In this document: one piece after another, positions 34,082-63,308 of the stretch
Layout: each line of letters starts with the position of its first letter
Numbering within the stretch: the first letter of the stretch is position 1
From: Hyaloraphidium curvatum SAG 235-1
Lineage: Eukaryota; Fungi; Monoblepharomycota
Assembly: GCA_025558095.1 (NCBI GenBank)
Contig: JAIVFI010000011.1
Coordinates: forward strand, 558,001 to 622,000
DNA: 64,000 nucleotides
Direction of reading: 5' to 3'
The notes under the pieces: generated by a model
What the model saw: only the letters and a program-made list of their open reading frames with translations
Databases searched by the model: none
What the model was told of the DNA's origin: nothing
Position numbers and translations under genes: made by a program

Positions 34082-34159
34082 CGTCGGCTGGCTAAGCAGG
34101 AAGTTGGATCGGCCGGTAAACAAACAGACGCGTGCCTCCTACGGTAGATTTAACCGACG

Positions 34160-37099
34160 ATGCCTCCCACGATCCGCCCCGCGAACCCGCGATGCGAGTA
34201 CGAGCGCAATCCCCTGGGCATTGGCACAGCGCTGCCGCGCTTCAGCTGGACGCTCGAGGCCGCAGACGCGTCGGCACGCGGGCTGAAGCAGTTGGCCTAC
34301 CGCGTCGTAGTGGCCGCCTCGCCCGAGGCCCTGGACGCTCTTTGTGGCGATAGTACCAGGTCATCAGCAACCCCAGTGTCGGATGTGCTGTGGGACTGTG
34401 GCAAGGTCGAGTCGCGGCAGACGCTGCACGTGGTCTACGCCGGCACCCCGCTCGCCTCGCGCCAGCGCTGCCACTGGAAGGTCTGCGCCTTCGATTCCGC
34501 CTCCGAACCCTCCTGGAGCGACGCCGCGTGGTTCGAACTCGGCATCCTCGAGCCCACCGCCGACGCCTGGCGCGGCGCAAAGTGGATCGAACCGGACCTC
34601 CCCCCCGTCCGCGCCGAGCCAAGGCGCAGCGCGGCCGTCATGAGCTTCTCCACTTCCCAAACGCCCCCCGAGACCAGGCTCACCCCGTGCTCCATGCTGC
34701 GCCGGGAGTTCGCCGTGCGCGGGCCCGTCCGCCGCGCGAGGGCCTACGCGACCGCGCACGGCATCTACGCCCTCGAAATCAACGGCCGCCGCGCCGACGA
34801 CCGCGAGTTCGCGCCCGAATTCACGCCCTACCGCACGATGCTCTGCGTGCAGACCTACGACGTCGCCCCGCTGCTCGCCGAGGGGCCCAACGCGCTCGGC
34901 GTGACGGTCGCGGACGGGTGGTGGGCCGGCCGCGTGGGCATGTCGGGGGACGCGCTGCAGTACGGGGACAGGCACGGGCTGCTGCTGCTGCTCGAGATCG
35001 AGTACGAGGACGGGACGACGGAGCGGGTGGTGTCGGACGAAAAGTGGAGGTGCTCGACGGGGCCGCTGGTCTACAGCGACATCTTCGTCGGGGAGATGTA
35101 CGACGCCAGGCTCGAGGTGGACGGGTGGAGCAGTGCCGGGTTCGATGCCTCGGGGTGGAAGGGCGTCAAAACTGCCGACCAGGTGCGTCCTGCGGGCGAC
35201 CGCTTGGAATCCACGATCTTACTCGCCCTGCCTTTCCAGCACGGGTACGCGAACCTGGTCCCCCAGCAGGGACCTCCCGTCCGCGCCATCGCCACGCTGC
35301 CCTGCACCGACATCATTACCACGCCCAAGGGCGAGACCGTCCTGGACTTTGGCCAGGTCATCGCCGGCCGTATCAAAATGAAGGTGCGCGGCGAGGCCGG
35401 GACAAAGATCGTCATGGAGCACTCCGAGGTGCTCGACAGGGAGGGCAACTACTTCAACAACATCCTCGGGCGGAATAAGGACCAGTGCGACGTGTACATC
35501 TGCAGGGGCGGCGGCGAAGAGGAGTACGAGGCGCGGTTCACGTACCACGGCTTCCGCTACGTGCGCCTCACGGGCTACCCGGGCACGCCGAGCAAGGCCG
35601 ATTTCGCCGCGGTGGCCTACTCCTCGGACCTCGAGCCCACGGGCACCTTCACGAGCTCCTCGCCGGAGCTCACCAAGCTCCAGCAGAACATCGTCTGGTC
35701 CCAGCGCGGCAACTTCCTCTCCATCCCCACCGACTGCCCGCAGCGCGAGCGCGCGGGCTGGACCGGCGACATCCAGATCTTCGGCCCCACCGCGTGCTTC
35801 AACCTCGACTCGGACGCCTTCCTCGCGCGGTGGATGGACGCCGTCGCCGCGGACCAGCTGCCCGACGGACAGGTGCCGCACGTGGTACCCTACCTGGACG
35901 CGTACAGGGAGCTCGTCGGCAAGTCGCTGGGAAGCGACTCGTCGGCGGCGTGGGGCGACGCGTGCATCGCGGTGCCGCTGCAGCTGTACCTGAGGTACGG
36001 CGACAGGCGCGCCCTGGAGCGGCACTGGCCCGTCATGGAAAAATGGCTGGCCTACATCGACCGGCGCGCGGCGAACCACGCGAGCTGGTCGTACTACCTC
36101 GACCCGCGCAAGTTCCTCTCTCCCTCGCGCCGCGCGGCCGAGAGGTACCTGTGGAACACCGGGTGGCATTTCGGGGACTGGCTCGCGCCGTCGCAGTGCT
36201 GGGACATGTTCGGCGCCGCGGGGATGTTCCTCTCGGCGTTCCCGACGCGGCAGTTTGTTGCATCGGCGCAGTACGCCGAGTCCACGAAGATGGCGGCCCG
36301 GGTGGCGGAAGTGCTGGGGATGGATGAGAAGGCGGCACACTACCGCGAGCTGAGCGGCAAGATCAGGGAGGCGTTCGTGGGCGAGCACGTGGACAAGCGC
36401 GGGCGGCTGTCGCCCCACCTGCAGGGCACCTACGTCATCGCGCTCAAGTTCGGGCTGGTCCCCGAGCACCTCGTCCCCGCGGCGGTCGCCAACCTGGTCT
36501 CGCTGCTCGAGGCCAACGAGCACCGCCTCGACACGGGCTTCGTCTCGGTGCCCCACCTCCTAGACGTCCTGTGCGACCACGGCCGGCGGGACGTCGCCGC
36601 GAAGGTGCTGCACCAGCGCAAGTGTCCCGGCTGGCTGTTCGAGGTGGACAACGGCGCGACGACCATGTGGGAATCGTGGAAGGCGGTGGCGCCCGACGGG
36701 ACCGTGAGCAAGTTCTCGTTCAACCACTTTGCCTTTGGGTGCGTGGGGGACTGGATCTACCGGAAGCTCGGCGGCGTGCATGCCGACGTGACGGGGATCA
36801 GGATCGCGCCCAAACCGGACGGGGTGGTGACGAGCGCCGAGACGAGGTTTGAGTCGGCGTGGGGGAGGGTGGCGTGCCGCTGGAAGCTCGACGGGGGCCG
36901 GATGGAGCTGGTTGCGGAGGTGCCGGTGAACGCCGAGGCGACGGTGGTGCTTCCGGGCGCCGATCCCGGGGAGGTGGTGCTGGACGGGAAGCCGCTGGCG
37001 GTTCCGGCAAAGAAGACGACTGAGGGCACGGAGATGGTCGTGGGCTCGGGCACGTGGACCTTCAGCTTCAGTTTCCCTGGAGAGGAAGCTATGGCTTGA
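34160..37099 (+). CDS. GH78 alpha-L-rhamnosidase (bacterial-type architecture), one probable in-frame intron
   Basis: CEYERNPLGI..PRFSW, DFGQ, FTYHGFRY, PTDCPQRERAGWTGD, GATTMWESW, SFNHFAFG; intron GTGCGT..CAG about 35183-35239; no signal peptide. Confidence 0.93.
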   Translation: MPPTIRPANPRCEYERNPLGIGTALPRFSWTLEAADASARGLKQLAYRVVVAASPEALDALCGDSTRSSATPVSDVLWDCGKVESRQTLHVVYAGTPLASRQRCHWKVCAFDSASEPSWSDAAWFELGILEPTADAWRGAKWIEPDLPPVRAEPRRSAAVMSFSTSQTPPETRLTPCSMLRREFAVRGPVRRARAYATAHGIYALEINGRRADDREFAPEFTPYRTMLCVQTYDVAPLLAEGPNALGVTVADGWWAGRVGMSGDALQYGDRHGLLLLLEIEYEDGTTERVVSDEKWRCSTGPLVYSDIFVGEMYDARLEVDGWSSAGFDASGWKGVKTADQVRPAGDRLESTILLALPFQHGYANLVPQQGPPVRAIATLPCTDIITTPKGETVLDFGQVIAGRIKMKVRGEAGTKIVMEHSEVLDREGNYFNNILGRNKDQCDVYICRGGGEEEYEARFTYHGFRYVRLTGYPGTPSKADFAAVAYSSDLEPTGTFTSSSPELTKLQQNIVWSQRGNFLSIPTDCPQRERAGWTGDIQIFGPTACFNLDSDAFLARWMDAVAADQLPDGQVPHVVPYLDAYRELVGKSLGSDSSAAWGDACIAVPLQLYLRYGDRRALERHWPVMEKWLAYIDRRAANHASWSYYLDPRKFLSPSRRAAERYLWNTGWHFGDWLAPSQCWDMFGAAGMFLSAFPTRQFVASAQYAESTKMAARVAEVLGMDEKAAHYRELSGKIREAFVGEHVDKRGRLSPHLQGTYVIALKFGLVPEHLVPAAVANLVSLLEANEHRLDTGFVSVPHLLDVLCDHGRRDVAAKVLHQRKCPGWLFEVDNGATTMWESWKAVAPDGTVSKFSFNHFAFGCVGDWIYRKLGGVHADVTGIRIAPKPDGVVTSAETRFESAWGRVACRWKLDGGRMELVAEVPVNAEATVVLPGADPGEVVLDGKPLAVPAKKTTEGTEMVVGSGTWTFSFSFPGEEAMA

Positions 37100-39803: not shown

Positions 39804-40505
39804 TCAAAGCTTCCCGTTGATCGCCTTTGCCGGGATCCCCACCCACGTCAGCCCCGGCTCCTTGATCGGCGCGCTCACCGCCGCATGCATGCCGATCCTG
39901 GACCAGTCCGCAATGTCGCACCGGTCGCGCACCGAAGCGGCGAGACCCATCTTCACGCCCCGCCCGATCCTGAGAAATCCGCCGACACTGTTTGTGCCGC
40001 CCAGGTGGCATCCTTCCCCGATGACGACGTCGTGGCCGATCAGTGACAAGGCCCCGACGTGGGCAAAGTCGCCGATGTGGACCTGCGAGCTGACGACGGC
40101 CAGGTTCCCGACGTAGGCGCCTCTCCCGAGCGTGGTGTTTGTGAAGGAAACCTGACAGTCCTTGCCGAGGATCACGGGGAAGCTGGTCGGCAGGCCCCAC
40201 CTGGGCACCTCGGCGTCGACCTGGGCGGCGAGCCTCAGCTTCCCGCCGGGGTCGGCGAGCACAATGAAGACGTCGAGGGCGTCGGCGCCACACCGTTTGA
40301 GGAAAGCGGCCACGCCCTCGGACGACCGCACGTGCGCCCAGCCATTGTTGACGAGCACGGGGTGCACGCGCTCGCCGTCGTCCCAGCAGACGGCGCGGCC
40401 GGCGGCAATTTCGGCGGCGTGAGACGTGGCGACCGAGTCGTAGATGCTGGCCGCGTGGCCGCCGCCGCAGCGGAAGAGCACGGCCCTGCGGGACGGCGCC
40501 GCCAT
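39804..40505 (-). CDS. Sugar O/N-acetyltransferase, NeuD/PglD family (hexapeptide repeat), intron-less
   Basis: LFRCGGGHA..WDD N-domain; hexapeptide repeats LGRGAYV/IGDFAHV/IGHDVVIGEGCHL; C-terminal WVGIPAK. Confidence 0.8.
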   Translation of the reverse strand: MAAPSRRAVLFRCGGGHAASIYDSVATSHAAEIAAGRAVCWDDGERVHPVLVNNGWAHVRSSEGVAAFLKRCGADALDVFIVLADPGGKLRLAAQVDAEVPRWGLPTSFPVILGKDCQVSFTNTTLGRGAYVGNLAVVSSQVHIGDFAHVGALSLIGHDVVIGEGCHLGGTNSVGGFLRIGRGVKMGLAASVRDRCDIADWSRIGMHAAVSAPIKEPGLTWVGIPAKAINGKL

Positions 40506-41226
40506 CGGGCGGGCGGGCGGGTCGGCGGGTCGCGCAACAAGGGCCTTTCCAGTTCGCAACGCGGCGATACCGCAGGCGGCCACGCGGTGCGGAAGAGGCG
40601 GGTACGGAGACTGCCGAACGGGAAGTGTCCTCAAGGTAGTCACAGGCAAGCGCGATCCGCTAAGCCCCATTCATCCCCCGCCACGTTGTCTGGACCCTGC
40701 CCTCGGCCCAAAGAGGTGCAACTCAGAAGCAGTCGCCGTGACCGCCGGAAAAATTGGTACAGTGCCGAAGGTCTTCCAGGACGCCCGGATGAAGAGCCGA
40801 GTGGGTCTCGCGGCTGCGTCTCGATTGGATTCCAGTGGCCCCTTCCCGCGCCCAGGGCTTCCAACCCGAGGCAAAGCCGCAGTGAGGTTTGATGGACACT
40901 ATCTGCAGCTTCGCACGGACGAGCCCTTGAGTCGTTTGACTGTGGTCGAGCACCTTGAGCTATGGACGGTGCCGGAACATGACGAGCAGCAATGTGAACC
41001 CCAGGAGTGAGCTGGCTCCAGTGGTGAATGGGAACGCAAGGTCATCCAAAGCGACATCGTGCCTCTAGCATGACACGTTCTCCGCCCTCTACCTTTTCCC
41101 CGCACTCCATAGCCCGCATCCAGCCTTCGGAATCTGCGGGCCACCTGCCTGGGTTTGGCCGCGCTTGACTCACTTGGCCCCTTTCCCCAATAAACTATAA
41201 ACAACGACCGGTCGGCTTCGGCCGCC

Positions 41227-42408
41227 ATGGTACGACTCGGGCGATACGCCCAACAGCTGCTGTTTGGGATCGCGTGCGTGGCGGCAGGGCATTGGAGCGC
41301 CCGCGGCCTGGTCGCGGCGCCCTGGTCGTCGCCGGTTGCTGGCGCGGCATCCCAGGACTTGTCGGCGTCGGCTGCCCCGCGGGTGCGGTTCCTGCCGCCG
41401 GACGTGTTCTTTGTCTTCTACGCGCCCCCGTACGGGGAAACCTGCGGCGGCTGCACGTCGGTGCACGTGCTGGTGGACCAACTGAACCGGCTCTACGGCT
41501 CGGTGCAGGCGCCGGCCGCCTACCTCGTGCCGCGGGCCGAGGACCGCCGCAGAAACAGGACACTCGAGACCAACCCCGCGTACGCCACGCCGCTCCTGCC
41601 GCCGTGGATGAACGCTTCCGAGGGCGTGGCCGTGTACACGGACACGACGCGCGGGAACCCGCTCCGCGCCCGGCGAGCCGTGCGCTGGGTGCTCTACTTT
41701 CCCGGTGGGATCTGGGGCGCGCCCAAGGCGTCCGAGTACCCCAATGAGGACCTCATCGCGTGCTACATGCCCGCGTTCTGCAGCGAGTTCGCTGGGCGAC
41801 CGACCCTCACGCTGTTCGTCGTGGACATATACCTGGACTACTACCGGAATCTGCCTCGGCCTCCCGGTGGCCGCCGCAACGGGACGCTCTGGTTCTCGAG
41901 GAAGAACACTTACGCCGTCAACGGGACCCTGCTCACGAGGCCGCCGCCGGACCTTTCCGGAAAGGATGTCCTGGACCCCGAGACCAAGAAGCGCGAACGG
42001 CTCGAGCGCTTCGCCGTCTCGGAGCTCTTTGTCTCGTACGACCCGGCGACGTACCGCACCGTCGAGGCCGTGTTGACGGGGTGCTCCACCGTCGTTATGC
42101 CCTTTCCCGGGGTGGACCGGGAGACTTTCTTCCGCCAGTTCCCACGCTATGGGATGGGCTTCGGCTTGGAGGGGCGGCAGGATTCTGTGAGAAACATGGG
42201 CATGGCGATCGACCGCTCCCAGCTGAGGCTGAGGAACATGAAGGAGAACGTCGGTGCGTTCGTGGACGCCGTGGTGGAAAAGTGGTACCCGGGGGCGCTG
42301 GATTCTCCGGAAGTGCGGAGGTTCGCGTCGTCGCCGGATCCGCGGGCGTCGATCCAACTGGAGCGGATGCGGGAACGGCAGAAGGAGGGGCATCCAAGCT
42401 TAGCTTAG
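41227..42408 (+). CDS. WavQ-like putative glycosyltransferase-related protein, copy 1, N-terminal signal anchor
   Basis: YAPPYGETCGG..VHVLVDQLN, VAVYTD..GNPL.ARRAVRWVLYFPG, ELFVSYDPATY..EAVL.GC; intron-less. Confidence 0.65.
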   Translation: MVRLGRYAQQLLFGIACVAAGHWSARGLVAAPWSSPVAGAASQDLSASAAPRVRFLPPDVFFVFYAPPYGETCGGCTSVHVLVDQLNRLYGSVQAPAAYLVPRAEDRRRNRTLETNPAYATPLLPPWMNASEGVAVYTDTTRGNPLRARRAVRWVLYFPGGIWGAPKASEYPNEDLIACYMPAFCSEFAGRPTLTLFVVDIYLDYYRNLPRPPGGRRNGTLWFSRKNTYAVNGTLLTRPPPDLSGKDVLDPETKKRERLERFAVSELFVSYDPATYRTVEAVLTGCSTVVMPFPGVDRETFFRQFPRYGMGFGLEGRQDSVRNMGMAIDRSQLRLRNMKENVGAFVDAVVEKWYPGALDSPEVRRFASSPDPRASIQLERMRERQKEGHPSLA

Positions 42409-42732
42409 CGCTTTCTTCGCTTGATTGGGTCCCTGGTGGAAGAGCGAGCCTGCGCTTCATCCATTGTTGAATCTCCTAGCGCGCTCAGTCGGAGGGGGAA
42501 GCGCGGGTTCGGCGCAGGATCAGACGCGCGAATAAACGAACCCTCGCCCCCGAAAACCACCCTTTCCTCTCGTAGCGCCGCTGAGCCGTCGCCGCCACCC
42601 GACCAGTTACCTCATTGGCCGCCCTCCCGACCGCGGTGGCGCTCCCTGATCGCGATTGGGAGCTGGCAGCAGGAAGCAACGACGCGCTTCAGCACGCGTC
42701 GCAGCGACACGTTCCTCTCCCCTTTTGGGGCA

Positions 42733-43896
42733 ATGGCACGATTGAGAAGCTTCCTTAAGGAGCTGCTGATCGGGATCGCTTGTATTGCGGCGGGATGGGC
42801 TGCACGCGGCGCGGTTCCGCCGCCGTCGGCCTCGCTCTCCGTGGCGGCGGCCGCCCGCCTGCATTCACCGACAGCCTCCCCGCGGCTGCGTCTCCTGCCG
42901 CCGGACGTGTTCTTTGTCTTCTACGCGCCCCCGTACGGGGAGACCTGCGGCGGCTGCACCGTCGTGCACGTGCTGGTGGACCAACTGAACCGGTTCTATG
43001 GCTCGGTGCAGGCCCCCGCAGCCTACGTCGTGCCGATGGCGGGCATCAAGTGGTTCGACACGAACCCGGCGTACGCCACGCCGCGCCTGCCCCCGTGGAT
43101 GAACGCTTCCGACGGCGTGGCCGTGTACACCGACACGGTGCACGGGAACCCGCTCGGCGCCCGGCGAGCCGTGCGCTGGGTGCTCTACTTTCCCGGTGGG
43201 ATCTGGGGCGCGCCCAAGGCGTCCGAGTACCCCGCCGAGGACCTCATCGCGTGCTACTTGCCCGCGTACTGCAGCGAGTTCCCGGGGCGGCCGACCATCA
43301 TGCTCTTCGTCGTGGACATGTACCTGGACTACTACCGGAATCTGCCTCGGCCTCCCGGTGGCCGACGCAACGGGACTATCTGGTTCTCGAGGAAGAATTC
43401 CTACAGCCTCAACGGGACCCTGCTCACGAGGCCGCCGCCGGACCTTTCCGGCAAGGACGTCCTGGATCCCGCGACCAAGAAGCGCGAACGGCTCGAGCGC
43501 TTCGCCGTCGCGGAGCTCTTTGTCTCGTACGACCCCGCGACGTACCGCACCGTCGAGGCCGTGTTCACGGGTTGCCCCGCCGTTGTGATGCCGTTCCCCG
43601 GGGTGGACCGGACGACCTTTTTCCGCGACTTCCCGCGCCACGGGATCGGATTCGGCCTTGAGGAAGAGGAACGGCAGTTTTCGGTGAAAAACATGGGCAT
43701 GGCGATCGACCGCTCCCAGATGCGGCTGGGGAACATGAAGGAGAACGTCGGTGCCTTCGTGGATGCGGTGCTGGAAAAGTGGTACCCCGGCGCGATGGAT
43801 TCTCCAGAAGTGCGGAGGTTCGCGTCGGCACCGGATCCGCGGGCGTCCATCTTGCTGGAGCGGATTCGGGCACGGCAGAAGGAAGGGCATGTGTAA
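42733..43896 (+). CDS. WavQ-like putative glycosyltransferase-related protein, copy 2 (tandem paralog)
   Basis: Highly similar to copy 1 along its whole length in DNA and protein; same motifs. Confidence 0.65.
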   Translation: MARLRSFLKELLIGIACIAAGWAARGAVPPPSASLSVAAAARLHSPTASPRLRLLPPDVFFVFYAPPYGETCGGCTVVHVLVDQLNRFYGSVQAPAAYVVPMAGIKWFDTNPAYATPRLPPWMNASDGVAVYTDTVHGNPLGARRAVRWVLYFPGGIWGAPKASEYPAEDLIACYLPAYCSEFPGRPTIMLFVVDMYLDYYRNLPRPPGGRRNGTIWFSRKNSYSLNGTLLTRPPPDLSGKDVLDPATKKRERLERFAVAELFVSYDPATYRTVEAVFTGCPAVVMPFPGVDRTTFFRDFPRHGIGFGLEEEERQFSVKNMGMAIDRSQMRLGNMKENVGAFVDAVLEKWYPGAMDSPEVRRFASAPDPRASILLERIRARQKEGHV

Positions 43897-43962
43897 TCTT
43901 GAGGTATCCATTCTCACCGGCGCCTCGTCGACGGGCGCGAACGGAACCATGCCAAAGTGCGG

Positions 43963-45348
43963 TCAGGTCCCGACGGGCCGAGCCGCGGCCCCGAGCGCCT
44001 CCAGCAACGCCCCCAGGTCCCCGGCCTCGTGCAGCCCCACCACCGCCTCCCTCAGCGCGTCCGCCCCCTCCCTTCCGAGCCTAGGTCCCGCGAGCTCCGC
44101 GAACTTGTCCAGCAGCTCCCTTTCCGGGAACGGCGCGCGCGGGTGCGCGGGCGGAAAAGGCACCTTCCTTGCCATCACCACCCCCGCGTCGTCCTCGACC
44201 TCCACCCTGCACGGCCAGTACGGCAGCTCCCCCGCATGCGCACGCGTCAGCTCCGGGTCCTCCAATACCTCCACGCGGGCCACGAGCGCCCGCACGTCCG
44301 AATCGCGCCACCGCTCGGCGTCGAACGTGCGCAGGTCCACGCGGCCGTCGAGCACCGCAGCGGCGGCGAGGAAGGGCATCGAATGGTCCGCGCTCTCTCT
44401 TGTCTCCGGGTTCCACTTTGCGTCGCGGTCACCCTGCCCGCCACCGATCTCGTGCCACCCCCCTCTGGGCAGGTGCACCGTGATACGGCGGATGCGGTCC
44501 GAGGGTGGAAGCTCCGCCCGCATCGCTACGAGCGCGTGGATGGCGCCCTGGGAACTGTACTCGGCGGGGTAGAGCTTGAATCCCGTGCATCCGAGCGCGG
44601 TGCGGCCCTCGCAGCGTGCGCCGAGGGAGGACAGGTCGAACCGCGGGACGCCGAGGAGGTCGTACAGCCCCGCCACGCCCGAAAAGGGAGCCTCGGGCCC
44701 CGTCATCCCCGCTGCGGCGAGCCGGCACGCAAAGGCGCCGAGCATGGCGCCGTGCGCGGCGGCGAAGCCCTTCCAGTCCGAGAGCTGGCCGGTGCGGGTC
44801 GCGCGCAGCGGCACCGCGGGCACGACGGCCAGCGAGAGCGCGTGGGCCATCGTTTCCCGCGAGAAGCCGCGGAGGCGTCCGATGCCCGCGGCGGAGGCGA
44901 TGGCGACCTGCATCTGGTCGACGTGCCTGTCGCGCAACCGCATGCCGCCGCGGCGGAGGCCCGCCTGCACCTCGTACGCGACGGCGAGCGCCTCCAGCAG
45001 CGCACGGCCATCGCATTTAATCGAGGAGGCGGCGGCGAGCAGCGCGCCCAGCACGTCGCTCGGGTGGCCGCCGATGCCCGTGTCGTTGAAGTCGAGGTGG
45101 CGCGCCAGCCCCGCGTTGACGAACGCCGCCAGCTCGCACGGCAGCCGCCGATCGCAGCCGATCGCGAACGACGCGCCGCCGTCGCCGTCGGCCGCCAGCG
45201 CGGCGCACAGCTCGCCGGCGCGGCGGTCGAGAGCGGCCACGGCGCAGCCGAGCGCGTCCAGCACGTGCCACCGCGCCCGGAGCACGTCCTCGGCGGGCAC
45301 GGCGGCCTCGGCTGCGAATTTTGCAAGCGCTTCGAGTGCAGCGTCCAT
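43963..45348 (-). CDS. MmgE/PrpD family protein (2-methylcitrate dehydratase-like), intron-less
   Basis: VLDALGCA, RHLDFNDT..GHPSD, SDWKG, FKLYPAEY, TRESADHSMPF, HPRAPF..KF; no targeting peptide. Confidence 0.9.
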   Translation of the reverse strand: MDAALEALAKFAAEAAVPAEDVLRARWHVLDALGCAVAALDRRAGELCAALAADGDGGASFAIGCDRRLPCELAAFVNAGLARHLDFNDTGIGGHPSDVLGALLAAASSIKCDGRALLEALAVAYEVQAGLRRGGMRLRDRHVDQMQVAIASAAGIGRLRGFSRETMAHALSLAVVPAVPLRATRTGQLSDWKGFAAAHGAMLGAFACRLAAAGMTGPEAPFSGVAGLYDLLGVPRFDLSSLGARCEGRTALGCTGFKLYPAEYSSQGAIHALVAMRAELPPSDRIRRITVHLPRGGWHEIGGGQGDRDAKWNPETRESADHSMPFLAAAAVLDGRVDLRTFDAERWRDSDVRALVARVEVLEDPELTRAHAGELPYWPCRVEVEDDAGVVMARKVPFPPAHPRAPFPERELLDKFAELAGPRLGREGADALREAVVGLHEAGDLGALLEALGAAARPVGT

Positions 45349-45454
45349 CGCGATGCTGCGATGCGTGGACCTGATCCACGGACGCGGTTGTTTGTTTACG
45401 CTTCCTCAGACGCTAGCTTTCGTTCTTCCATCACAGTTGAACAAGCGGCCTGAA

Positions 45455-46648
45455 TCAATTGCAGGTAGAACAACCAGAGCGTGCAGCACACGGCATCCGC
45501 GTCGCCTCGGGCTCCGGGCGCATCCAGTGCCCCGTCCGCTGCAGCGCCTCCACCCAAACGCCCTCGACGGCCCTGCTCGCCGGCTGGCGTCTCACGTCGT
45601 CCGGCCAGCCGCACCGCCCCGATCCCCGCAGCCCAGGTATTGCGATCCCGCCAAAGAGCTCCAGCCCCATCGCGACCTCGTCGTACCCCAGCAGCGCCCT
45701 GGCGGCCGTCGCCCCCGTGTACCGCCCGCTGTACTCGTGGATGCCGTACCCCCCCGGCGTCCCCGGATCGCGCACGCATTGCACATTCAACGGCCCGCGC
45801 CACCCCTCGGCCGCAAACGCCGCGGCGCACCGCTCCCCGAGGTCCAGCAGCGCCGGATCCGCGCCGCGCTCCACGCGCTCGCTCTTGCCCTGGCGCATGG
45901 CGTGCCGCGTGGCGATCATCCCCACGATCGAACCGTCGGGGGCGATGAAGACCTGGATGGAGTGCTTGTCGGCCTCGAACGAGTGGAACAGGGGGACGCC
46001 CTCGTCGGCGACGCGGGCGAGGTAGGAGCGCAGGGGGGCGGGGTCGCCGAGGAAGCGCTGCACGACGTAGCCGGGCCTGCCGGCCAGACGGGCGAGCTGG
46101 GCGCCGTCGCCGACGAAGAAGACGCCCCCGGACGCGAAGCCCTCGCGCGGCTTGGCGACCAGGGGGAAGCCGTGGCGGGCGGCAAAGGCGGCCAGCTCCG
46201 CGGGGCCGGCGTCGGCTGTCGCCAGCGTGGGAGCGTACGGAAGCCCGTGGCGCGACGAGAATGCGGCGCTCTCGGCCTTGTCGAGCATGGCCAGGGCGGG
46301 GCCGGGGGCGCCGCACAGGAACGCCGTGCCGTGCGGCCGCCCCGCCTCGGCCCTGGCAGCCATCCACGCCACATCGGCATCGCGGCACGGAACGATCAGT
46401 TGCGGCCGCAGGCGGGCGAGTGCCTCGTCGAATTTGCGCGCAAAGCCGTCCTCCGCCAGGTTCGGCGCGAGGAACACCTCGTCGAAGTCAAACACAGCCG
46501 GGTCGCACGCGGTGCTGTTGAGCGCCGCGACATGCAGCCCGCCCCGGCGGCCTGCGAGCGCCGCGAGGACGTTCTGGCCGACGCCGCTGGCGCCCGACAG
46601 AAGCAGCACGCAGGGCCGGTCGGCGTCGGCCGCGCCGTCGCTCGGCAT
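45455..46648 (-). CDS. ATP-grasp enzyme (CarB-like short form of bacterial type), intron-less
   Basis: LLSGASGVGQNV, IVPCRD, LDKAES..F..GLPYAPT, FPLVAKPREGFASGGV, VVQRFL, GWRGPLNVQ, HEYSGRYTGAT. Confidence 0.78.
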   Translation of the reverse strand: MPSDGAADADRPCVLLLSGASGVGQNVLAALAGRRGGLHVAALNSTACDPAVFDFDEVFLAPNLAEDGFARKFDEALARLRPQLIVPCRDADVAWMAARAEAGRPHGTAFLCGAPGPALAMLDKAESAAFSSRHGLPYAPTLATADAGPAELAAFAARHGFPLVAKPREGFASGGVFFVGDGAQLARLAGRPGYVVQRFLGDPAPLRSYLARVADEGVPLFHSFEADKHSIQVFIAPDGSIVGMIATRHAMRQGKSERVERGADPALLDLGERCAAAFAAEGWRGPLNVQCVRDPGTPGGYGIHEYSGRYTGATAARALLGYDEVAMGLELFGGIAIPGLRGSGRCGWPDDVRRQPASRAVEGVWVEALQRTGHWMRPEPEATRMPCAARSGCSTCN

Positions 46649-46918
46649 CGCCAGCCGCAGGGACGCAGGACCGCGTGAGGGCAAACTCAAGGCCGCCGTC
46701 GGCAGCAGCGCAAAGTCGATGGAAGATTGAGGGTGGAGGGTGTTTGCTCGGAGCGCGGCCACCATCATCATCGATCCCTCAAACAAGGGATGGCATTGTG
46801 CAGGGATCGGCGGTGTCGGACGCAGCCCCATGTAATCTGACGCCCGCTGCTAGCCATCCACGGCAAAAGAATCCCGCCGGGCCTCGGAACGGCATCCCAT
46901 CGGCCGCCCGCCCCAGCA

Positions 46919-48064
46919 TCACTGGTGAAACATGAAGGTCCGCCTGACGATCACCTTGCGCTTCACCCCCCCTTTCTCCTCACGCGCCACCGCCTCCTCC
47001 TCCCCTATCCGCCCCGCGAGCTCCTCCATCCAGTGTCCGTCCGACAGCGTGGCCTTGAGCTTGGGCTCGAGCGCCGTCGGGCCGGCCAGGAACCTCCGCG
47101 CGTGGTTCGACATGATCCGCAGCGGCGGGTTGCCCTCCCCCACCGGCACCCCGCGCTCCAGGCCCTGCTTGAGCAGGTAGGGCACCGACACGAGCGCGGC
47201 GCCGAGGTCGATCCCCATGATCCTGAACCGGGCCAGCCGCGGGTGCGACGGCCCGATGCCCACCACGCCGGGCGCCTCCTCGGCCCAGCTCGTGTTCCAG
47301 TACCGCGAGACAAAGTCGAACCCGATCAGGTCCGCCGCGCCCTCCTCGCCGCCGTTCATCCAGCGGAACAGCTGGTCCGCGAACGCCGTCGAGTACAGGT
47401 TGTCCCCGTTGGTCACGAGCAGCCAGTGGCACCCGTGCGGGTTGCGGTCGTTGGCCTGCCCGAATAACCGGTCCAGCGCCGCGTCGGTGAAGGCGTACGG
47501 GCGGTCGTAGCACGTGCCGTTGACGCACCGCAGCCGCGCCAGCAGCGGGCCCACCTCCCGCGCCGCGACCGCCGCCGCCTCCTCATCCGAGACCGGCAGC
47601 ACGTCGGCGAAGCCCGGGCAGCCCAGGACGTCCCCGGCGTAGCCGCGCACCGCGTCCGCAAACAGCGCGCGGTCCGTGGCGGGGTCCGTCACCACGAAGA
47701 ACAGCTTGAACGGCACCGTGCCGTGCGAGAGTGCCGACAGAAAGGTCGGCATGAAGGCGAGGTGCCCGTCGTACGACCGCACCACCGCGCAGACGGTGTT
47801 TGTGCTCGTCGGGTACGACCACGCGCGGCACGCCGGCGCCGCGGCGGTGTACGCGAATGCCGGCGTCGCAGCCGATCGCGCGGCGCGGAGTGCCGTCGCC
47901 GCGTCGCCGAGCACCGCCGCATCGTGCGACGCCGGATGCGGCGGCGGTCCGCCGAGCGCGGAGAAGTGGCTCGCCGGCGCGCCGGGCACGAACCGCGGGA
48001 GGAGCTGGCAGGCGAGCACGCCGAGGAGAAAAGGCACGGCGCCGCCGCGGAGCCGCCGGGACAT
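46919..48064 (-). CDS. Type II membrane GT-A-fold glycosyltransferase (GT2-like), intron-less
   Basis: N-terminal TM and stem; VCAVVRSY, LLVTNGDNLYS (DxD-like), DFVSRY, IDLGAALV, SDG, terminal FMFHQ. Confidence 0.65.
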   Translation of the reverse strand: MSRRLRGGAVPFLLGVLACQLLPRFVPGAPASHFSALGGPPPHPASHDAAVLGDAATALRAARSAATPAFAYTAAAPACRAWSYPTSTNTVCAVVRSYDGHLAFMPTFLSALSHGTVPFKLFFVVTDPATDRALFADAVRGYAGDVLGCPGFADVLPVSDEEAAAVAAREVGPLLARLRCVNGTCYDRPYAFTDAALDRLFGQANDRNPHGCHWLLVTNGDNLYSTAFADQLFRWMNGGEEGAADLIGFDFVSRYWNTSWAEEAPGVVGIGPSHPRLARFRIMGIDLGAALVSVPYLLKQGLERGVPVGEGNPPLRIMSNHARRFLAGPTALEPKLKATLSDGHWMEELAGRIGEEEAVAREEKGGVKRKVIVRRTFMFHQ

Positions 48065-48750
48065 GGCCCGGTCCGCGGCCGGGCGTCGTGGTTTTGGCCA
48101 CCGACGAGGGTTGAGGGATTGAGGACGCCGAAGGCCCGGGCACCCTCACCATTCCCGGAGCTCTTTGACCGGAGGCGAGCCGGATAAGGTACTTTCACCG
48201 AACGCCCGGCTCGGGGAGATGCACCGCAGGGCAGCGCTGTCCCCGTCGCCGCAACGGCCCGCAGGGGACCGAAGCCGCCGTCGTCGCCGCATGAGGGCGA
48301 AATAATCGCCACATCCGAATCCCGGTCCGATCCGAGACGAGCGGGCTCTGTTGCACCCGTCGCCCTCCCTGCATATCGGGCTGTTCCGGCCCAACCCTCG
48401 TGGGGCGTGCAGTGTGGCTTTTCCAGAGAACGGCGGCCACTCCGGCACGGGAACTCCCGTGCGAGGTTCCTCCAGATTTACATTGACGGAAGACATCGCA
48501 ATCAACGTCCAATGCCGATGCGGCCTGCTCGGCAGCGGGACTCTGCCGCCCCGGTGGGACGCTGGGACCTTGTTGACGACGGTTTCGCAGTAGCGATACG
48601 TTCGCAGCAGCTGGACGAAGCTCCTCATCCGTGCCATGGATGGCCAGCAAAAGAGCGAAAGTCTCGCCTGAGGCCCTCACTGATGCGCATGCTTGCGATC
48701 ACGTCCCGCGACGCGTCCGCAATCAAACGGTCGGAGCACGCGTCGGGCCG

Positions 48751-49845
48751 ATGGCATCCGCCCGCTCCGCCGTGCTCCGCGCCGCTCTGCTTCTTTCGGC
48801 GTGCGCGCTTCTTGGCCAGCTCGCCGGATTCCCGCCCGCACGCGGCCCTGTCGACGCGTCCCACTCCCGCATGGCGCTCCGCGGGATCGCGTACCCGATC
48901 CTCGCCGAGAACAACTCGCTCCCCGGCCTCCCGCGGCTGCTCCGCGCGATCCACCACCCGCTGAACGCGTACGCGGTGCACGTCGACGCCCGGGCCGCCA
49001 ACACCTCGGCCCACGCCGCGCTCGTGGAGTTTGCCTCGCGGCCGCCCTATTCCCGGAATGTCCTCCTCCTGCCCCCGACGCTGACCACGTACGCGGGCAT
49101 CTCGACGGTACTGGCCCGCGTCGAGGCGACGGAGGCGCTGCTGCGGCTGTTCCCGGGGTGGTCGCACTGCATCCCCCTGAGCGGGAGCGACTACCCGCTG
49201 GTGGGGCAGGAGGACCTGATGGCGGCGCTGGACGGGGCGTCGCGGGACGCGCGGGGGAAGCCCATCGACGCCGTGTTCCTCGCAACCTGGAGGCACACGG
49301 AACGGTGGCGCACCGCGGCCCTGGACGCGGCGATGCTCGGCGCCGACAACGGGCAGCTGGCCGTGCTCAGAAGCAAATGGCACTGGATCCGGCCCCCCCG
49401 GCCCGTACCGAGCGGGCCGGCGCAGTTCATCCTCCCGCGGCGGGTGGTCGGGGCCGCGCTGCCCTCGGCCGAGTTCAGGAGGATGCTGGTGGCGTTCGCC
49501 GGGACCGAGGCGCCCGGGGAGACCGTATGGCAGGCCTTCTTCGAGTGGACGCAGCTGGGGAGGGAGCTCGGGCGATACATAGCGGACGACTCGATGCGGT
49601 ACGACGAGCCCGTGCCGGAGGAGTCGCACACGCTGTTCCTCGAGACGAGGGAGCAGCTCGAGCGGGCGCTGGCGTCGGGCGCGCCGTTCGCGCGCAAGTT
49701 TCGGCCCGACGCGACGGTACTGGACGCCGTCGATGCGCTGGACGTAAAGCGGAGGGAGGAGGTCAGGGCTGCGGTGGTGGCGCGGATGAAGCGCGCAGTT
49801 GCCAAGGCGCTGGAGAAGGACGAGGCACGTGCGGCGGGAGAATGA
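48751..49845 (+). CDS. GT14 family (core-2/I-branching/xylosyltransferase-like) glycosyltransferase, intron-less
   Basis: Signal anchor; IAYPILA, LLRAIHHPLNAYAVHVDAR, WSHCIPLSGSDYPL, FARKF. Confidence 0.85.
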   Translation: MASARSAVLRAALLLSACALLGQLAGFPPARGPVDASHSRMALRGIAYPILAENNSLPGLPRLLRAIHHPLNAYAVHVDARAANTSAHAALVEFASRPPYSRNVLLLPPTLTTYAGISTVLARVEATEALLRLFPGWSHCIPLSGSDYPLVGQEDLMAALDGASRDARGKPIDAVFLATWRHTERWRTAALDAAMLGADNGQLAVLRSKWHWIRPPRPVPSGPAQFILPRRVVGAALPSAEFRRMLVAFAGTEAPGETVWQAFFEWTQLGRELGRYIADDSMRYDEPVPEESHTLFLETREQLERALASGAPFARKFRPDATVLDAVDALDVKRREEVRAAVVARMKRAVAKALEKDEARAAGE

Positions 49846-49892: not shown

Positions 49893-51503
49893 TCACCCCC
49901 CGCATATCGAGTTCGGCGTCACCGAGATCCCGCTCCCCCTCACCAGGGAGTAGAACACCCCCGCGACCGTGAGCGCCGAGATGGCGACGGCCCTCAGCGC
50001 GCCCATGGTCACCGCGGCCCCCAGCCACCGCACGGCGTACCGGTCCGTGTCGCAGAACAGCTCGAGGATGCCGTCGTGGTGCGCCGCGTCCTGCACCGCG
50101 GCGGGGGGCATCGATCGCGCGGCGCGGCGGAGCGAGGCGCGGGCTTCCTTGTAGAGGTACGCCGCGCCGCGGATGCTCGAGTTGGTGGCGGCGACGAGGA
50201 CGAGGTCGAAGCCGGCGTAGACGGCGACAAAGAGGAGGAAGAGGAAGACGTACATCGGGAGGCAGGAGCCCGCGGCGAGGTTGATGACGGAGGGAACGAG
50301 CACGCTCGTCAGGAGGATGTAGACGATGAGGTCGCGGCCGGAGGTGAGGAACGGCAGGCCCTGTCGCCACCGTGCCGAGAGCTGGGCGTGGATGATTTCG
50401 TAGGGTTCCATGGTCGAGCAGTGGTCGGCGGACGGCGCGGCGCCGTTGGCGGCATACTTGTCGACCAAGGACCGAAGAGACATTGCGGTTGCGCGGCGCT
50501 GGATCCTGTCGGCAAGCTGCAGGCTCGCCAGGGTGAATTGCGGCCTGGCAATGACGTTGAGACACTGGTAGCCCATGAATCCCAGGAGCAGGAAGACCAG
50601 CATCGGCGGGCCGTACCACGTCGCAAAGAACGCCGGGCCGAAGGTCACCAGGGAGGTCCACTCCAACCCGATGCAGTAAGGCAGCATAGTGACAACCATG
50701 CGAAGGACCATGTCCAGAACCCGCAGTGCCGCTTCGTAGCGCACGACGCCCCCGGCGCACGACTCGGCCGGGCACGGGCAGTAGCCGTCGCCGGCAACGT
50801 GCGAAAGCAGCCTCTTCCTCGGGTTGCCGCCCTTGCCCCCGGCCGCGGCATCCCTCGCCACGAGCTGCGACCACCTCGCGATCCCCGAGACCACGCTCCC
50901 GCTCCTGTCCGCCGGGCCCCGCGGGCCCGTCCGGCCCTGCTTGGCCGCGGCCTGGTACTGCCTCCGCATGCCCGCCAGGACCGTCACGAAGAGCTGGCCT
51001 GCGACGACGACGAAGAGCATCGCGACGGTTCCGGCGACGAGCTGCGTGTTCGCAAAAGTGGTTCCCCCGCTCCCGTTCAGCACGATGGGGGGCACCGCGA
51101 AGAGCGCGGCCGGGATGCCGTACAGCATGGAGCGGAGCGACGGGCGGCCGGTAAAGGGTTCCAGAAGGATGCTGAGCCGCACGAGCCTGCCGAGCGCGGG
51201 GCTGACCCGCGACAGCTCGCGGACCAGCGCGTCGGCGTCGAGCGGCATCTCCGCGCGCAGGTTTTTAGCGGGATCGGGGTCGGGCAGGGCCTCTCCGCGC
51301 GCCGGCGGGCCGAGAGGAGGTAGCAATGTCGGCGGCGGGGTTGGAAATATGGCGAGCCACTCGAGGTCGTCGAACAGCGGCTCGTCTTCCGGCGGGGGAG
51401 CGGGGAGCGCGTGTGCGTCTCCAATGCCGGAATCCCGCGCCGGGGCGGACTCCGCCGACTCCGCTCGCGGCAGAAAGGCAGGCGCCGCCACCGGGCCCTC
51501 CAT
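49893..51503 (-). CDS. Multi-pass (about 7 TM) membrane protein of an expanded family, intact copy A; GR/7TMIC-like C-terminus
   Basis: About 7 hydrophobic helices, cytosolic loop with CPCP..C, C-terminal ILELF..YAVRWLGAAVTMGALRAVAISALTV; paralogs at 58.7 and 63.0 kb. Confidence 0.7.
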   Translation of the reverse strand: MEGPVAAPAFLPRAESAESAPARDSGIGDAHALPAPPPEDEPLFDDLEWLAIFPTPPPTLLPPLGPPARGEALPDPDPAKNLRAEMPLDADALVRELSRVSPALGRLVRLSILLEPFTGRPSLRSMLYGIPAALFAVPPIVLNGSGGTTFANTQLVAGTVAMLFVVVAGQLFVTVLAGMRRQYQAAAKQGRTGPRGPADRSGSVVSGIARWSQLVARDAAAGGKGGNPRKRLLSHVAGDGYCPCPAESCAGGVVRYEAALRVLDMVLRMVVTMLPYCIGLEWTSLVTFGPAFFATWYGPPMLVFLLLGFMGYQCLNVIARPQFTLASLQLADRIQRRATAMSLRSLVDKYAANGAAPSADHCSTMEPYEIIHAQLSARWRQGLPFLTSGRDLIVYILLTSVLVPSVINLAAGSCLPMYVFLFLLFVAVYAGFDLVLVAATNSSIRGAAYLYKEARASLRRAARSMPPAAVQDAAHHDGILELFCDTDRYAVRWLGAAVTMGALRAVAISALTVAGVFYSLVRGSGISVTPNSICGG

Positions 51504-51725
51504 TGGAGCGCTCGCAGGGAAGCTGGTGGATCCGGAGTTGGCCAAGTCAGGCTGGCGCAAGGGCTGGCGAATCACTCGATCGCGAGTTGCGCTCGATGGA
51601 TCGCGCGCAATCGCTGGTTGGATTCACAAGGCGGGGAGGGTCTCTTTATAGCATTTGTCGCGTCGCCTGTTTCTTCTTGAGGCTCAGGACATGGGTTTCG
51701 GGCGGGTCGTCTCTGGGACGCAGAG

Positions 51726-55319: not shown

Positions 55320-56099
55320 TCACAGCTTCTCCCTTCCCGCCCCTTCGTCCGCCGTCCCACCCCTCCTCAGCGGCCTCGCCGGGGTGCCCACCCACGTCCA
55401 ACCCGGCTCGACGATGTCGCGGACCACCCTCGCGTGCATGCCGATCATGCTCCAGTCGGCCACCCTCGCCCCGTCCCTCACCACCGCCCCCATGCCCAAC
55501 CACACCCCCTCGCCCAGGCTCGCCCCCCCCGCGCACATCGCCCCCCCGCTGGCCTGCGGGTAGTCCCCTACGAGCGTGTCGTGGGAAAACGTCACGGGCC
55601 CCGAGAGCATGCAGAACCTGCCCACGATCGCCGCGTTGCCCACCGCCGCATGGTACCCGACGAAGGTGCCCTCGCCCAGCGCGGCCGTGGGCGCCACGTA
55701 GGCGGTCGGGTGCACCGCGACCGGGAACCGCAGGCGGGCGCGGGCGAGCTCGGCCCGCAGCTCGCACGCGAGGCGTTTCCGCACGGCGGGCTTGCCGTGG
55801 CACACGAAGGCATCGACGGGGCCGGCGCCGCAGAATGCCCGGGCGTCGTCGGCGGTCCGGAGGTGCACGAAGCCCGCGGCGGCCAGCGTGCGGTGGAGCG
55901 CCGGCCCCTCGTCCCACGCAGCCGCCCGCCCGGCCTCCGCCGAGTCGGCGTACTTCCCTCCCAGCGCGTCGAGCGTCACCCCGGCCTGCTTTCCCCCGCA
56001 GCGGAAGAGGACAAGCGGCGGAATGCCGATCGCCGGGTCCCTGCTGGGTCCCCGGCCCCGGCCCCCTCGCGGCCCCGCCGCCCCCCGCTCGCACTGCAT
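55320..56099 (-). CDS. Sugar O/N-acetyltransferase, NeuD/PglD family, paralog of 39804-40505
   Basis: LFRCGGKQA..WDEG, FPVAVHPTAYVAPTAALGEGTFV, FSHDTLVGD, VADWSMIGMHA..EPGWTWVGTPAR; start uncertain. Confidence 0.8.
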   Translation of the reverse strand: MQCERGAAGPRGGRGRGPSRDPAIGIPPLVLFRCGGKQAGVTLDALGGKYADSAEAGRAAAWDEGPALHRTLAAAGFVHLRTADDARAFCGAGPVDAFVCHGKPAVRKRLACELRAELARARLRFPVAVHPTAYVAPTAALGEGTFVGYHAAVGNAAIVGRFCMLSGPVTFSHDTLVGDYPQASGGAMCAGGASLGEGVWLGMGAVVRDGARVADWSMIGMHARVVRDIVEPGWTWVGTPARPLRRGGTADEGAGREKL

Positions 56100-56408
56100 C
56101 GCGGGGGTGGCACACGGAACAAGGGCCGCGGGTGCTGGCGCTCGATGCGGCGGCGGCAGGGGCGTCGGGCGTGGACCCCAGAACACTTGGTCCGAGGGCG
56201 CGGTCGCGGCGGCGGCGGCATCCTTGTTTGTCCCCAGCCCCCGACGAAGCCCCAAGGTGCGGATTCATCTTCCACTTGGACCACGCGATCACCGATGTTG
56301 CGTTAGCCACGTCCTGGGTGGGTGATGATGCGGGGCCCCTTTGCCCAATCCACAGGGCACATCAATTCGAATGACCAATCTTTCTGACCTGACGCCTCAA
56401 AATCCCTC

Positions 56409-58168: not shown

Positions 58169-58676
58169 TGCGGTGGCACGCGGCGGGCCGCTGGAGGGGC
58201 AAGAGGCAGGATCCGGGGGCGCGGAAGCGCGGGAAAGCGGGTCGGAAGTGGCGTTATTCGAAGACGCGATAGAAGAGTGTCTCGGCGGTCAGGGCTTGGG
58301 GTCAACTTGGGGCGTCGTTCGTACCCATCCCGGCCGCTGATCCAGACGTAGCAGTCACGGATTTAGAAACAAGAGACAGGGAATAAGCGGTGCTTCGTCT
58401 TCTCGATCCGCGATCGAGCCGCTGGACCGGCATCGGAACCCGTTGCCTGGTGCGTTGTCCAAAGTCTCGCGCCACGCAGACCACGGACACAACGGGACCT
58501 TTCATCGCGGCCGAAAACAGCACGAATTTGGTTCTCAAAAAACGAGATGTCGGTGATCGCGAGGATCAGGACTGGGGCGTTGGCACTGCGCGCGTTGTTT
58601 AACGCGCGGCGTGGGGCGGGCCGGGCGGGCAATCTCGTTGCCCACTTCACGCCTCCACGACTCCGCGAAGGTCCCA

Positions 58677-62489: not shown

Positions 62490-63025
62490 TACAGTTGGAG
62501 AAGTGTGAGCCCAAACGGTTTGGCTCGGTGGCTCTACGAGGTGGAAGGGTAGTTTTTGGGAGGCAGGGCGCGCTTGTCGTGTATATTGCCTTCGAACGGT
62601 TTGGCACTGTCTCCCCCTCAGCCTCATCGCGCGCCTGCCCTGAGCCCGCACCAAAACCCCCAAAACGGAACTCGCCAAAATCAATGATTCCCGCGGGAAA
62701 CTCACCAAACTGTGCTGCAAAACATGATAAACCATGTTGGCAATGTAATCCGTAGGTTTCCCAAGGGACAGCGTGCCAACGGGCAAGGTGGTCTGTTCCG
62801 CACGGCCGGTCGCCGGTGACTTAGCGACGCCAGTCCCCGCCCAAATCAAAGTCGCTCCCCTACGCGATGGAGGAGATGATGTTCGAGTTCGACACCGGGC
62901 CGCCACCGAAAAAGCCGGCCAAAGCCAAACCTTCCTCAGGATCCGCGGCTCCGCCGTCGCTGTTCTCGAAGTGGAACTCGGCGCGACCTTCGCGGAACGC
63001 GCCTGCACCACTCCGCGAGGTCCCA

Positions 63026-63305
63026 ATGGAGGACCCGATGGCGGCGCCTGCCTTTTTGTCGCCTATGGACCCGGCCGAGCCCGCCTCGGCGCGGGATTCC
63101 GGGGCAGGAAACGCTCCCGCCCTCCCCGCTCCCCCTCGGGAAGACGAACCGCTGTTCGACGGCCACGAATGGCTCGTCATTTTTTCCCACCCCGCCGCCC
63201 ACATTGCTACCTCCCCTCGGCCGGCCAGCGCGCGGCGAGGCCCTGCCTGACCCGGATCCCGCCAAGAACCTGCGCGCGGAGATGACCCTCGACGCCGCGG
63301 CGCTG
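63026..63305 (+). pseudogene. 5' fragment of multi-TM family (copy C), truncated and frameshifted
   Basis: MEDPMAAPAFL..EDEPLFDGHEWLVIF..PDPDPAKNLRAEM matches the N-termini of copies A and B, then breaks off. Confidence 0.75.
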
Positions 63306-63308
63306 GTT

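Follow-up and report, generated by a model that had tools for sequence, protein, structure and literature searches.

A block of glycan-enzyme genes with bacterial-type tailoring enzymes in the fungus Hyaloraphidium curvatum

Bacterial amino-sugar loci of the PglC-F or DegT-PglD kind, known for bacillosamine, viosamine and perosamine in O-antigen, capsule and protein glycosylation, combine NeuD/PglD-like acyltransferases, glycosyltransferases and ATP-grasp accessory enzymes. Here we describe a block of genes for the same kinds of enzymes in a 64,000-nucleotide stretch of DNA, referred to below as the window, from Hyaloraphidium curvatum SAG 235-1, an aquatic fungus of an early-diverging lineage. 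The window consists of nuclear DNA and covers positions 558,001 to 622,000 of contig JAIVFI010000011.1 (G000:C11:558001-622000), which measures 816 kb in an assembly of 31.9 Mb in 55 contigs. The block lies at positions 39804-49845 of the window. An earlier reading of the letters alone (the original prediction) had proposed seven contiguous intron-less genes there, and we recovered seven complete open reading frames (ORFs), every one a single uninterrupted frame, encoding a NeuD/PglD-like acyltransferase, two WavQ-like proteins, an MmgE/PrpD-family enzyme (PrpD below), a CarB-like ATP-grasp ligase, a GT-A-like glycosyltransferase and a GT14 glycosyltransferase. Our analysis partly supports the view that this block is a eukaryotic glycan gene cluster incorporating horizontally acquired bacterial tailoring enzymes.

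The likeness to the bacterial loci extends to the families themselves, since PglC-F and DegT-PglD loci contain homologues of the window ATP-grasp, PrpD and WavQ-like proteins beside DegT and PglD; the earlier association with bacterial glycan loci is confirmed in that homologues of these families sit together in amino-sugar loci. In contrast to those systems, the fungal block resides in a eukaryote, four of its enzymes have N-terminal anchors suggestive of the secretory pathway, its acyltransferase scores under the NeuD cut-off, and it lacks an aminotransferase, a dehydratase, a flippase and a polymerase. Among fungi, the galactosaminogalactan cluster of Aspergillus also brings together genes for an amino-sugar-containing surface glycan, but its enzyme families are entirely different from those described here, and we know of no ATP-grasp, PrpD, NeuD-like or WavQ-like member in a fungal polysaccharide cluster. 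Fungal walls are thought to use a narrow set of sugars, and bacterial-type amino-sugar tailoring enzymes (DegT, NeuD/PglD-like, WavQ-like, ATP-grasp) lie, to our knowledge, outside textbook fungal glycobiology.

We consider it somewhat probable that the genes of the block act together in glycan decoration and were assembled from different origins. The main argument for functional co-location in the fungus is that ATP-grasp, WavQ-like, PglD-type and DegT genes are repeatedly neighbours in unrelated genomes. Linkage in other organisms was found for ATP-grasp, PrpD, WavQ-like, DegT and PglD, and was not found for the GT-A-like and GT14 families. At least four families of the block are of bacterial type: NeuD-like, WavQ-like GT-B, PrpD and ATP-grasp.

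Two adjacent genes on the (-) strand constitute a bacterial-type pair within the block. One encodes the CarB-like ATP-grasp ligase (45455..46831, a 458-aa ORF whose likely start is Met62 at 46648), and the other the PrpD enzyme of 461 aa (43963..45348), which Pfam, tree and alignment assign to an ATP-grasp-linked bacterial subfamily. The two are separated by 106 bp, the GT-A-like gene stands on the same strand 87 bp upstream of the ATP-grasp gene, and glycosyltransferase genes are found on both sides of the pair. Both genes are single-copy in the fungal genome, where the ATP-grasp gene is unique and PrpD has just one distant relative. Both MmgE/PrpD Pfam domains were detected in the PrpD protein (162.7 and 126.6 bits, cut-off 32.1 each), which upholds the earlier family call. 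These domains are common to 2-methylcitrate dehydratase PrpD and cis-aconitate decarboxylase, the closest solved structures are 1szq and 6r6t, and relatives in the PDB comprise 2-methylcitrate dehydratase, cis-aconitate decarboxylase and IDS epimerase. An identity as 2-methylcitrate dehydratase equivalog was ruled out by scores far under the equivalog cut-offs (156 vs 950, 86 vs 575 and 68.5 vs 458 bits) and by a separate clade in the tree; unlike that enzyme, the window PrpD has an ATP-grasp ligase as genomic partner rather than prp genes. Its best relatives are bacterial, from Thioalkalivibrio paradoxus and a Pseudomonadales metagenome-assembled genome (MAG), at 43-51% identity, with the best hits at 48-51%.

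For the ATP-grasp protein, the CarB-like call stood in part: the family profile matches PDB entry 2pn1 (E = 1e-15) and many ATP-grasp enzymes, but the window protein reaches 104 bits against NF009402, under the cut-off of 218, and has no Pfam match itself. Its close homologues match PylC-like_N, CPSase_L_D2 and ATPgrasp_Ter, and the closest of all come from Zoogloea species at 63-68% identity. The fungal sequences keep every invariant column of the subfamily alignments, 22/22 in ATP-grasp and 73/73 in PrpD, which argues for function.

A profile scan for the ATP-grasp family, with one genome taken per species, yielded 80 bacterial loci. A PrpD homologue was located within 10 kb of ATP-grasp in 13 of them, among which are nine of the ten whose ATP-grasp is closest, and DegT stood beside ATP-grasp in 27, including eight of the same ten. 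DegT is often directly upstream, in the same operon and together with a glycosyltransferase. The cassette genes are adjacent in Zoogloea, Rhodocyclaceae, Methylobacillus, Thioalkalivibrio and others, usually next to DegT and a glycosyltransferase and sometimes accompanied by a PglD-type acetyltransferase, and the Zoogloea operon (loci L033-L038; in a MAG, L034:3598-11086) reads AAA ATPase / TPR-GT41 / DegT / PrpD / ATP-grasp on one strand. The PrpD homologue abuts an ATP-grasp homologue (40-50% identical) in T. paradoxus, a betaproteobacterial MAG and the Pseudomonadales MAG, and in two of these three loci the pair is placed among DegT, GT2, PglD-type, hexapeptide, methyltransferase and formyltransferase genes. 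This DegT-PrpD-ATP-grasp operon is conserved in bacteria and apparently undescribed. The fungal pair resembles it in the adjacency of the two genes on one strand and in the PrpD subfamily involved, but it has no adjoining DegT or TPR-GT41, and its gene order is reversed relative to Zoogloea.

Phylogenies had been proposed earlier as a check for bacterial nesting, and their outcome differs between the two genes. In a maximum-likelihood tree of ATP-grasp with 81 rows (eukaryote sampling was nil in this tree and in that of PrpD), the fungal protein falls inside the Zoogloea clade, with values of 96, 99 and 97 in the Shimodaira-Hasegawa-like approximate likelihood-ratio test. Five Zoogloea genomes are sister to the fungus, followed by Z. 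dura and then by Rhodocyclaceae and Methylobacillus. This nesting is the pattern expected for horizontal transfer from a Zoogloea-like betaproteobacterium. In the PrpD tree, the fungal protein has a long branch and an unresolved basal position in the ATP-grasp-linked bacterial subfamily (support 95), which is itself split from a canonical PrpD/aconitate-decarboxylase-like outgroup (support 100). Forcing the fungal PrpD into the Zoogloea PrpDs cost 61 log-likelihood units (approximately unbiased, AU, test p = 0.009), a rejection that we treat as soft, since the constrained group was picked with the tree already in view and the branch is long. The tree and the test show the predicted protein to be a member of the bacterial subfamily placed outside the Zoogloea branch. 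Joint arrival of both cassette genes from Zoogloea was therefore rejected. The fungal order, ATP-grasp then PrpD, is that of the Pseudomonadales MAG and the reverse of that in Zoogloea. Two accounts of the origin of the cassette remain: a mosaic operon from an unsampled donor that had the fungal gene order, or separate acquisition of each gene. The literature search on gene transfer in Hyaloraphidium found nothing relevant.

The next two genes of bacterial type are tandem paralogues, 81% identical, that encode WavQ-like glycosyltransferases of predicted GT-B fold. Copy 1 (41227..42408, (+) strand) has 393 aa and an N-terminal hydrophobic helix, and its tandem duplicate, copy 2 (42733..43896, (+) strand), has 387 aa if counted from its first ATG. 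Neither of them matches a Pfam or NCBIfam family. Modelling with AlphaFold on ten family members (pLDDT 78) gave the GT-B fold with Foldseek probability 1.0 and a VIA Z of 14.6 to the glucosyltransferase 8xsg, so that the predicted fold is well supported by the model. As for the name, the two ESM Atlas clusters nearest in shape bear the automatic name “WavQ” (TM 0.60-0.62 by query, 0.74-0.81 by row), which makes the label given in the original prediction reasonable, but “WavQ” is an uncurated source name that has no curated model behind it and is absent from the searchable literature.

Relatives of these proteins are scarce. A word-based search for homologues outside the fungus returned three metagenomic clusters only, of 301 Pseudomonadota genomes sampled with a profile only 11 contained relatives, and viral contigs gave only two distant relatives at 27-28% identity. 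Where their surroundings are available, amino-sugar genes are among the neighbours. On the 82-kb metagenomic contig L011, a WavQ-like gene is accompanied by DegT, GT2 and a NeuD-family acetyltransferase that passes the TIGR03570 cut-off with 210.7 bits, and on contig L009 a WavQ-like gene is found with a WecE-like DegT. L011 also encodes a 438-aa protein of unknown family with no match in the fungal genome, and for this reason the contig is not callable as a close relative. An isolate of Pseudohoeflea suaedae carries a four-gene island of ATP-grasp, Amidohydro_2, WavQ-like and DegT genes (L067:9920-14075). In that island, an amidohydrolase-2 family enzyme occupies the place of PrpD.

The acyltransferase gene (39804..40670, (-) strand) encodes 288 aa, with a possible alternative start at Met56 (40505). 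It was assigned to the NeuD/PglD-like left-handed beta-helix (hexapeptide) acyltransferases from PF00132 and TIGR03570. The Hexapep profile PF00132 scores 39.5 bits against a cut-off of 27, identifying a C-terminal hexapeptide-repeat left-handed beta-helix. The narrower NeuD/PglD-like label is only partly sustained: TIGR03570 (NeuD/PglB/VioB) aligns over model positions 6-202 but with 81.7 bits, under its cut-off of 160.8. The Rossmann-like N-terminal domain PglD_N (PF17836) was not reported, although the TIGR03570 alignment reaches the N-terminal part, and the PDB sequence matches include PglD, VioB, PerB and a pilin glycosylation protein.

The remaining two genes of the block are divergently oriented. 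The one on the (-) strand (46919..48064) encodes an orphan GT-A-fold glycosyltransferase of 381 aa, assigned from a fold model and eight paralogues. It matches no Pfam or NCBIfam family, and no CAZy family can be assigned. In keeping with the earlier GT-A call, the top Foldseek matches of its model (pLDDT only 69) are all GT-A enzymes, namely WrtF, LARGE1, SpsA, TarS and TarP, with E down to 1e-6, and the eight paralogues all keep Asp-Asn at 221-222 together with Asp245/Asp250, as in the acidic motif of the GT-A fold. A word-based homologue search found members of this family in H. curvatum only. On the (+) strand, the GT14 “Branch” gene (core-2/I-branching type; 48751..49845, in an ORF that opens at 48631) scores 67.4 bits against PF02485 (cut-off 23.4), confirming the GT14 call. 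Its start is likely the Met at 48751, which places the signal anchor at the N-terminus.

Signal anchors were judged by hydropathy scan only. Of the four that had been claimed, those of the GT-A-like protein (residues 8-26) and the GT14 protein (ORF residues 46-67, or 6-27 from Met 48751) are clear N-terminal hydrophobic helices, whereas the WavQ-like pair has a weaker one (peak at residue 11; AF2 helix at 4-20). The same scan found no N-terminal anchor in the acyltransferase, PrpD and ATP-grasp proteins, as had been stated.

The genomic distribution of the families bears directly on whether their meeting in this block is fortuitous. Four of the six families have several members at dispersed loci: at least 16 for the acyltransferase, 5 (with 6 genes) for WavQ-like, about 8 for GT-A-like and about 11 for GT14. 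Taking these roughly 40 loci as independent and uniformly placed over 31.9 Mb, the Poisson probability that the four families meet in a 10-kb span anchored on the unique pair is P ~1e-9. The linkage of the genes of the block is therefore non-random although four of the families are dispersed, and the original prediction of a cluster of glycan enzymes is supported. That prediction had itself named large, dispersed and unlinked families as evidence to the contrary; dispersal does apply to four of the six families, but not to the unique ATP-grasp/PrpD pair with its conserved linkage, and smaller clusters recur elsewhere in the genome on contigs C39, C20 and C2.

At C39:290001-302000, we observed a GH114 hydrolase, a 745-aa WavQ-like protein with a methyltransferase-like C-terminal part, a DegT gene adjoining the WavQ-like paralogues, and a second WavQ-like gene; this is a second amino-sugar cluster of the fungus. 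On C20, a single 628-aa ORF (342110-343996) encodes a NeuD-like hexapeptide acyltransferase joined to a DegT aminotransferase, and the latter part shares 52% identity with the L011 DegT. This fusion, a further acyltransferase and a GT-A-like gene lie within 33 kb. On C2, a GT14 and a GT-A-like gene are 9 kb apart. In total, the fungal genome holds at least eight full-length DegT/DnrJ/EryC1 genes for sugar aminotransferases, all of them intron-less and outside the window. This is pertinent to the pathway sketched earlier, which needs a sugar aminotransferase: there is none in the window, but candidates are present elsewhere. A search of the fungal genome for a PglF-type dehydratase (PF02719) gave weak generic SDR matches only.

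Expression was assessed from the assembled contigs of three runs, of which one, X1, is guessed to be RNA. Contigs of X1 cover ATP-grasp (45436-46524), GT-A-like (46582-48097) and GT14 (48723 onward) at depth 20-107, with depth 2-3 in the divergent intergenic region between the last two and no internal joints, a pattern that looks like transcription of unspliced genes. The ends of these contigs agree with the starts proposed for GT-A-like, at 48064, and for GT14, at 48751. A public gene model, P0129 (849 aa), joins ATP-grasp from Met62 to the whole of PrpD through a predicted intron of ~125 nt, and the two genes might be expressed as such a spliced fusion. Each ORF has its own stop and its own ATG, with the 106-bp spacer between them, and an X1 contig enters the interval (45349-45480) unspliced and ends at 45436, so that the fusion is unsupported. 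We also noted one X1 contig of depth 557 that links 44998 and 47194 through 34 unrelated letters and is probably chimeric or repeat-derived.

Members of the ATP-grasp superfamily turn a carboxylate into an activated acyl phosphate and transfer it to an amine. Given that DegT, which makes sugar amines, is the constant bacterial companion of ATP-grasp, and that characterised MmgE/PrpD enzymes dehydrate, decarboxylate or epimerise hydroxy- and tri-carboxylic acids, an N-acyl amino-sugar reading is the most economical. Under this scheme, a nucleotide-linked amino sugar would be produced in the cytosol by one of the DegT enzymes encoded elsewhere, and the ATP-grasp enzyme would N-acylate it via the acyl phosphate of a carboxylic acid. 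The PrpD-family enzyme would dehydrate, decarboxylate or isomerise a hydroxy- or tri-carboxylic acid before or after ligation, and the NeuD-like enzyme would acetylate the amino sugar. The anchored WavQ-like, GT-A-like and GT14 transferases would then build the sugars into a wall or surface glycan of the secretory pathway. By analogy with characterised relatives, we offer this specific chemistry, in which an amino sugar is N-acylated at the expense of ATP with a carboxylic acid processed by PrpD, as a tentative proposal that is less likely than not. Its fullest form is equally doubtful: H. curvatum would place bacterial-style N-acylated amino-deoxy sugars on secretory-pathway glycans, with the horizontally acquired ATP-grasp/PrpD cassette linking the amine of the sugar to a di- or tricarboxylic acid that PrpD has processed. 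Both the sugar modification and the enzyme pairing would be new for any organism, and the pathway would be the first of its type in a eukaryote.

Several observations weigh against a common role of the block in glycan decoration. Neither DegT nor a sugar dehydratase is encoded within the window, so the substrate-making steps must be encoded elsewhere. For the acyltransferase, GT-A-like and GT14 genes, no equivalent stands beside the bacterial cassettes in the 80 ATP-grasp loci, and the T. paradoxus cassette has no glycan neighbours, adjoining instead SDR, FAD oxidase, Leu/Phe-tRNA transferase and FemAB-like genes. In the literature searched, no function is described for any member of the ATP-grasp or PrpD subfamily, nor for their pairing. 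The discordant ATP-grasp and PrpD trees mean that a single joint transfer is not supported. Evidence of expression is weak overall, consisting of contigs of one presumed RNA run, and X1 coverage of PrpD is patchy and low (1-12). Finally, as four of the six families are large and scattered over the genome, their occurrence here could stem from an overall tendency to pile up and not from one pathway.

This last point leads to the view that the block is a glycan-gene neighbourhood with no common pathway, in which families expand locally in permissive regions and the foreign pair landed by chance of location, each gene serving a different glycan or none. The many dispersed loci, the mixed mini-clusters of differing composition on C2, C20 and C39 and the missing aminotransferase all fit such a history. 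We nevertheless regard it as rather unlikely, as the combinations ATP-grasp + WavQ-like + DegT and ATP-grasp/PrpD + PglD-type + glycosyltransferase recur adjacent in unrelated bacteria, which is what co-function predicts; the short spacers joining GT-A-like, ATP-grasp and PrpD on one strand and the low chance of the four families meeting under uniform placement point in the same direction. The pair could instead make or modify a free small molecule, for example a tricarboxylic-acid amide of siderophore-like or osmolyte-like type, with its position among glycan genes being incidental. MmgE/PrpD enzymes of known function do act on free tri- and dicarboxylates, the T. paradoxus pair lies beside non-glycan genes, and a TctC tricarboxylate-binding protein is encoded near one cassette locus. 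We judge this improbable in view of the frequency of DegT beside ATP-grasp, above all among the closest loci and often in one operon with a glycosyltransferase, and of the glycosyltransferases flanking the fungal pair on both sides.

Contamination or chimeric assembly as the source of the bacterial-type genes is very improbable. The resemblance of the ATP-grasp gene to Zoogloea might suggest it, and base composition does not discriminate: GC is 61-75% across the whole window without a step at the cluster, GC at third codon positions (GC3) is 0.85-0.94 in the cluster genes, within the range of their neighbours (0.71-0.95), and Zoogloea is similar in both GC and GC3, which renders composition uninformative on foreign versus native genes. 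Against an artefact, the genes are located in the middle of the 816-kb contig between fungus-specific families, their identity to any bacterium is at most ~68%, a contig of another sequencing run spans ATP-grasp and the fungus-specific GT-A-like gene, and the stretch is also present in other runs of the same organism. The limited identity, the fungus-specific flanks and the bridging contig together make contamination unlikely.

With these alternatives considered, the reading of the block as genes acting together in glycan decoration implies that the fungus probably decorates surface sugars in a bacterial manner. H. curvatum carries dozens of bacterial-type amino-sugar tailoring genes, and for one of them, ATP-grasp, a donor lineage can be named, the Zoogloea-like betaproteobacteria. 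What is new here comprises the fold assignments, the ATP-grasp/PrpD cassette and its recurrent bacterial linkage with DegT, PglD and WavQ-like genes. The analysis also exposes a widespread uncharacterised bacterial operon, DegT-PrpD-ATP-grasp, with or without a glycosyltransferase, and offers a testable hypothesis for it. Were the product confirmed, it would add to the known modifications of glycans and provide a clear example of gene transfer into fungi at the level of a pathway.

Two further genes are candidate extensions of the cluster. One (55320..56255, (-) strand) encodes another NeuD-like hexapeptide acyltransferase, a paralogue 38% identical to the first. Directly beyond GT14, a multi-pass membrane protein of unknown family (49893..51575, (-) strand, 560 aa) was included on the basis of paralogue linkage; it has no Pfam or NCBIfam domain, and a feature-based Atlas search led to unnamed eukaryotic transmembrane clusters only. 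A paralogue of it, 73-79% identical, lies at 58665-60288 ((+) strand) and also at 63023-63308, close to the second acyltransferase, in three frame-shifted pieces that represent introns or decay, and a third family member is found ~3 kb from a WavQ-like gene on contig C30.

Eukaryotic neighbours of the block in the window include a RabGAP-TBC gene and a gamma-glutamyltranspeptidase (GGT) gene. The GGT Pfam profile is shared, with a break at position 84/85, by two ORFs that overlap in different frames; this points to an intron and bears out the earlier statement that spliced genes are present in the window. At lower coordinates than the block, an ORF at 32192-34123 ((-) strand) encodes a 643-aa fusion of a cytochrome b5 domain and an FAD-dependent oxidoreductase (DAO). 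Next to it, an intron-less GH78 alpha-L-rhamnosidase gene (34160-37099, (+) strand; 979 aa) has all five Pfam domains of bacterial rhamnosidases and lies 2.7 kb from the acyltransferase gene; it could be a member of the same glycan neighbourhood.

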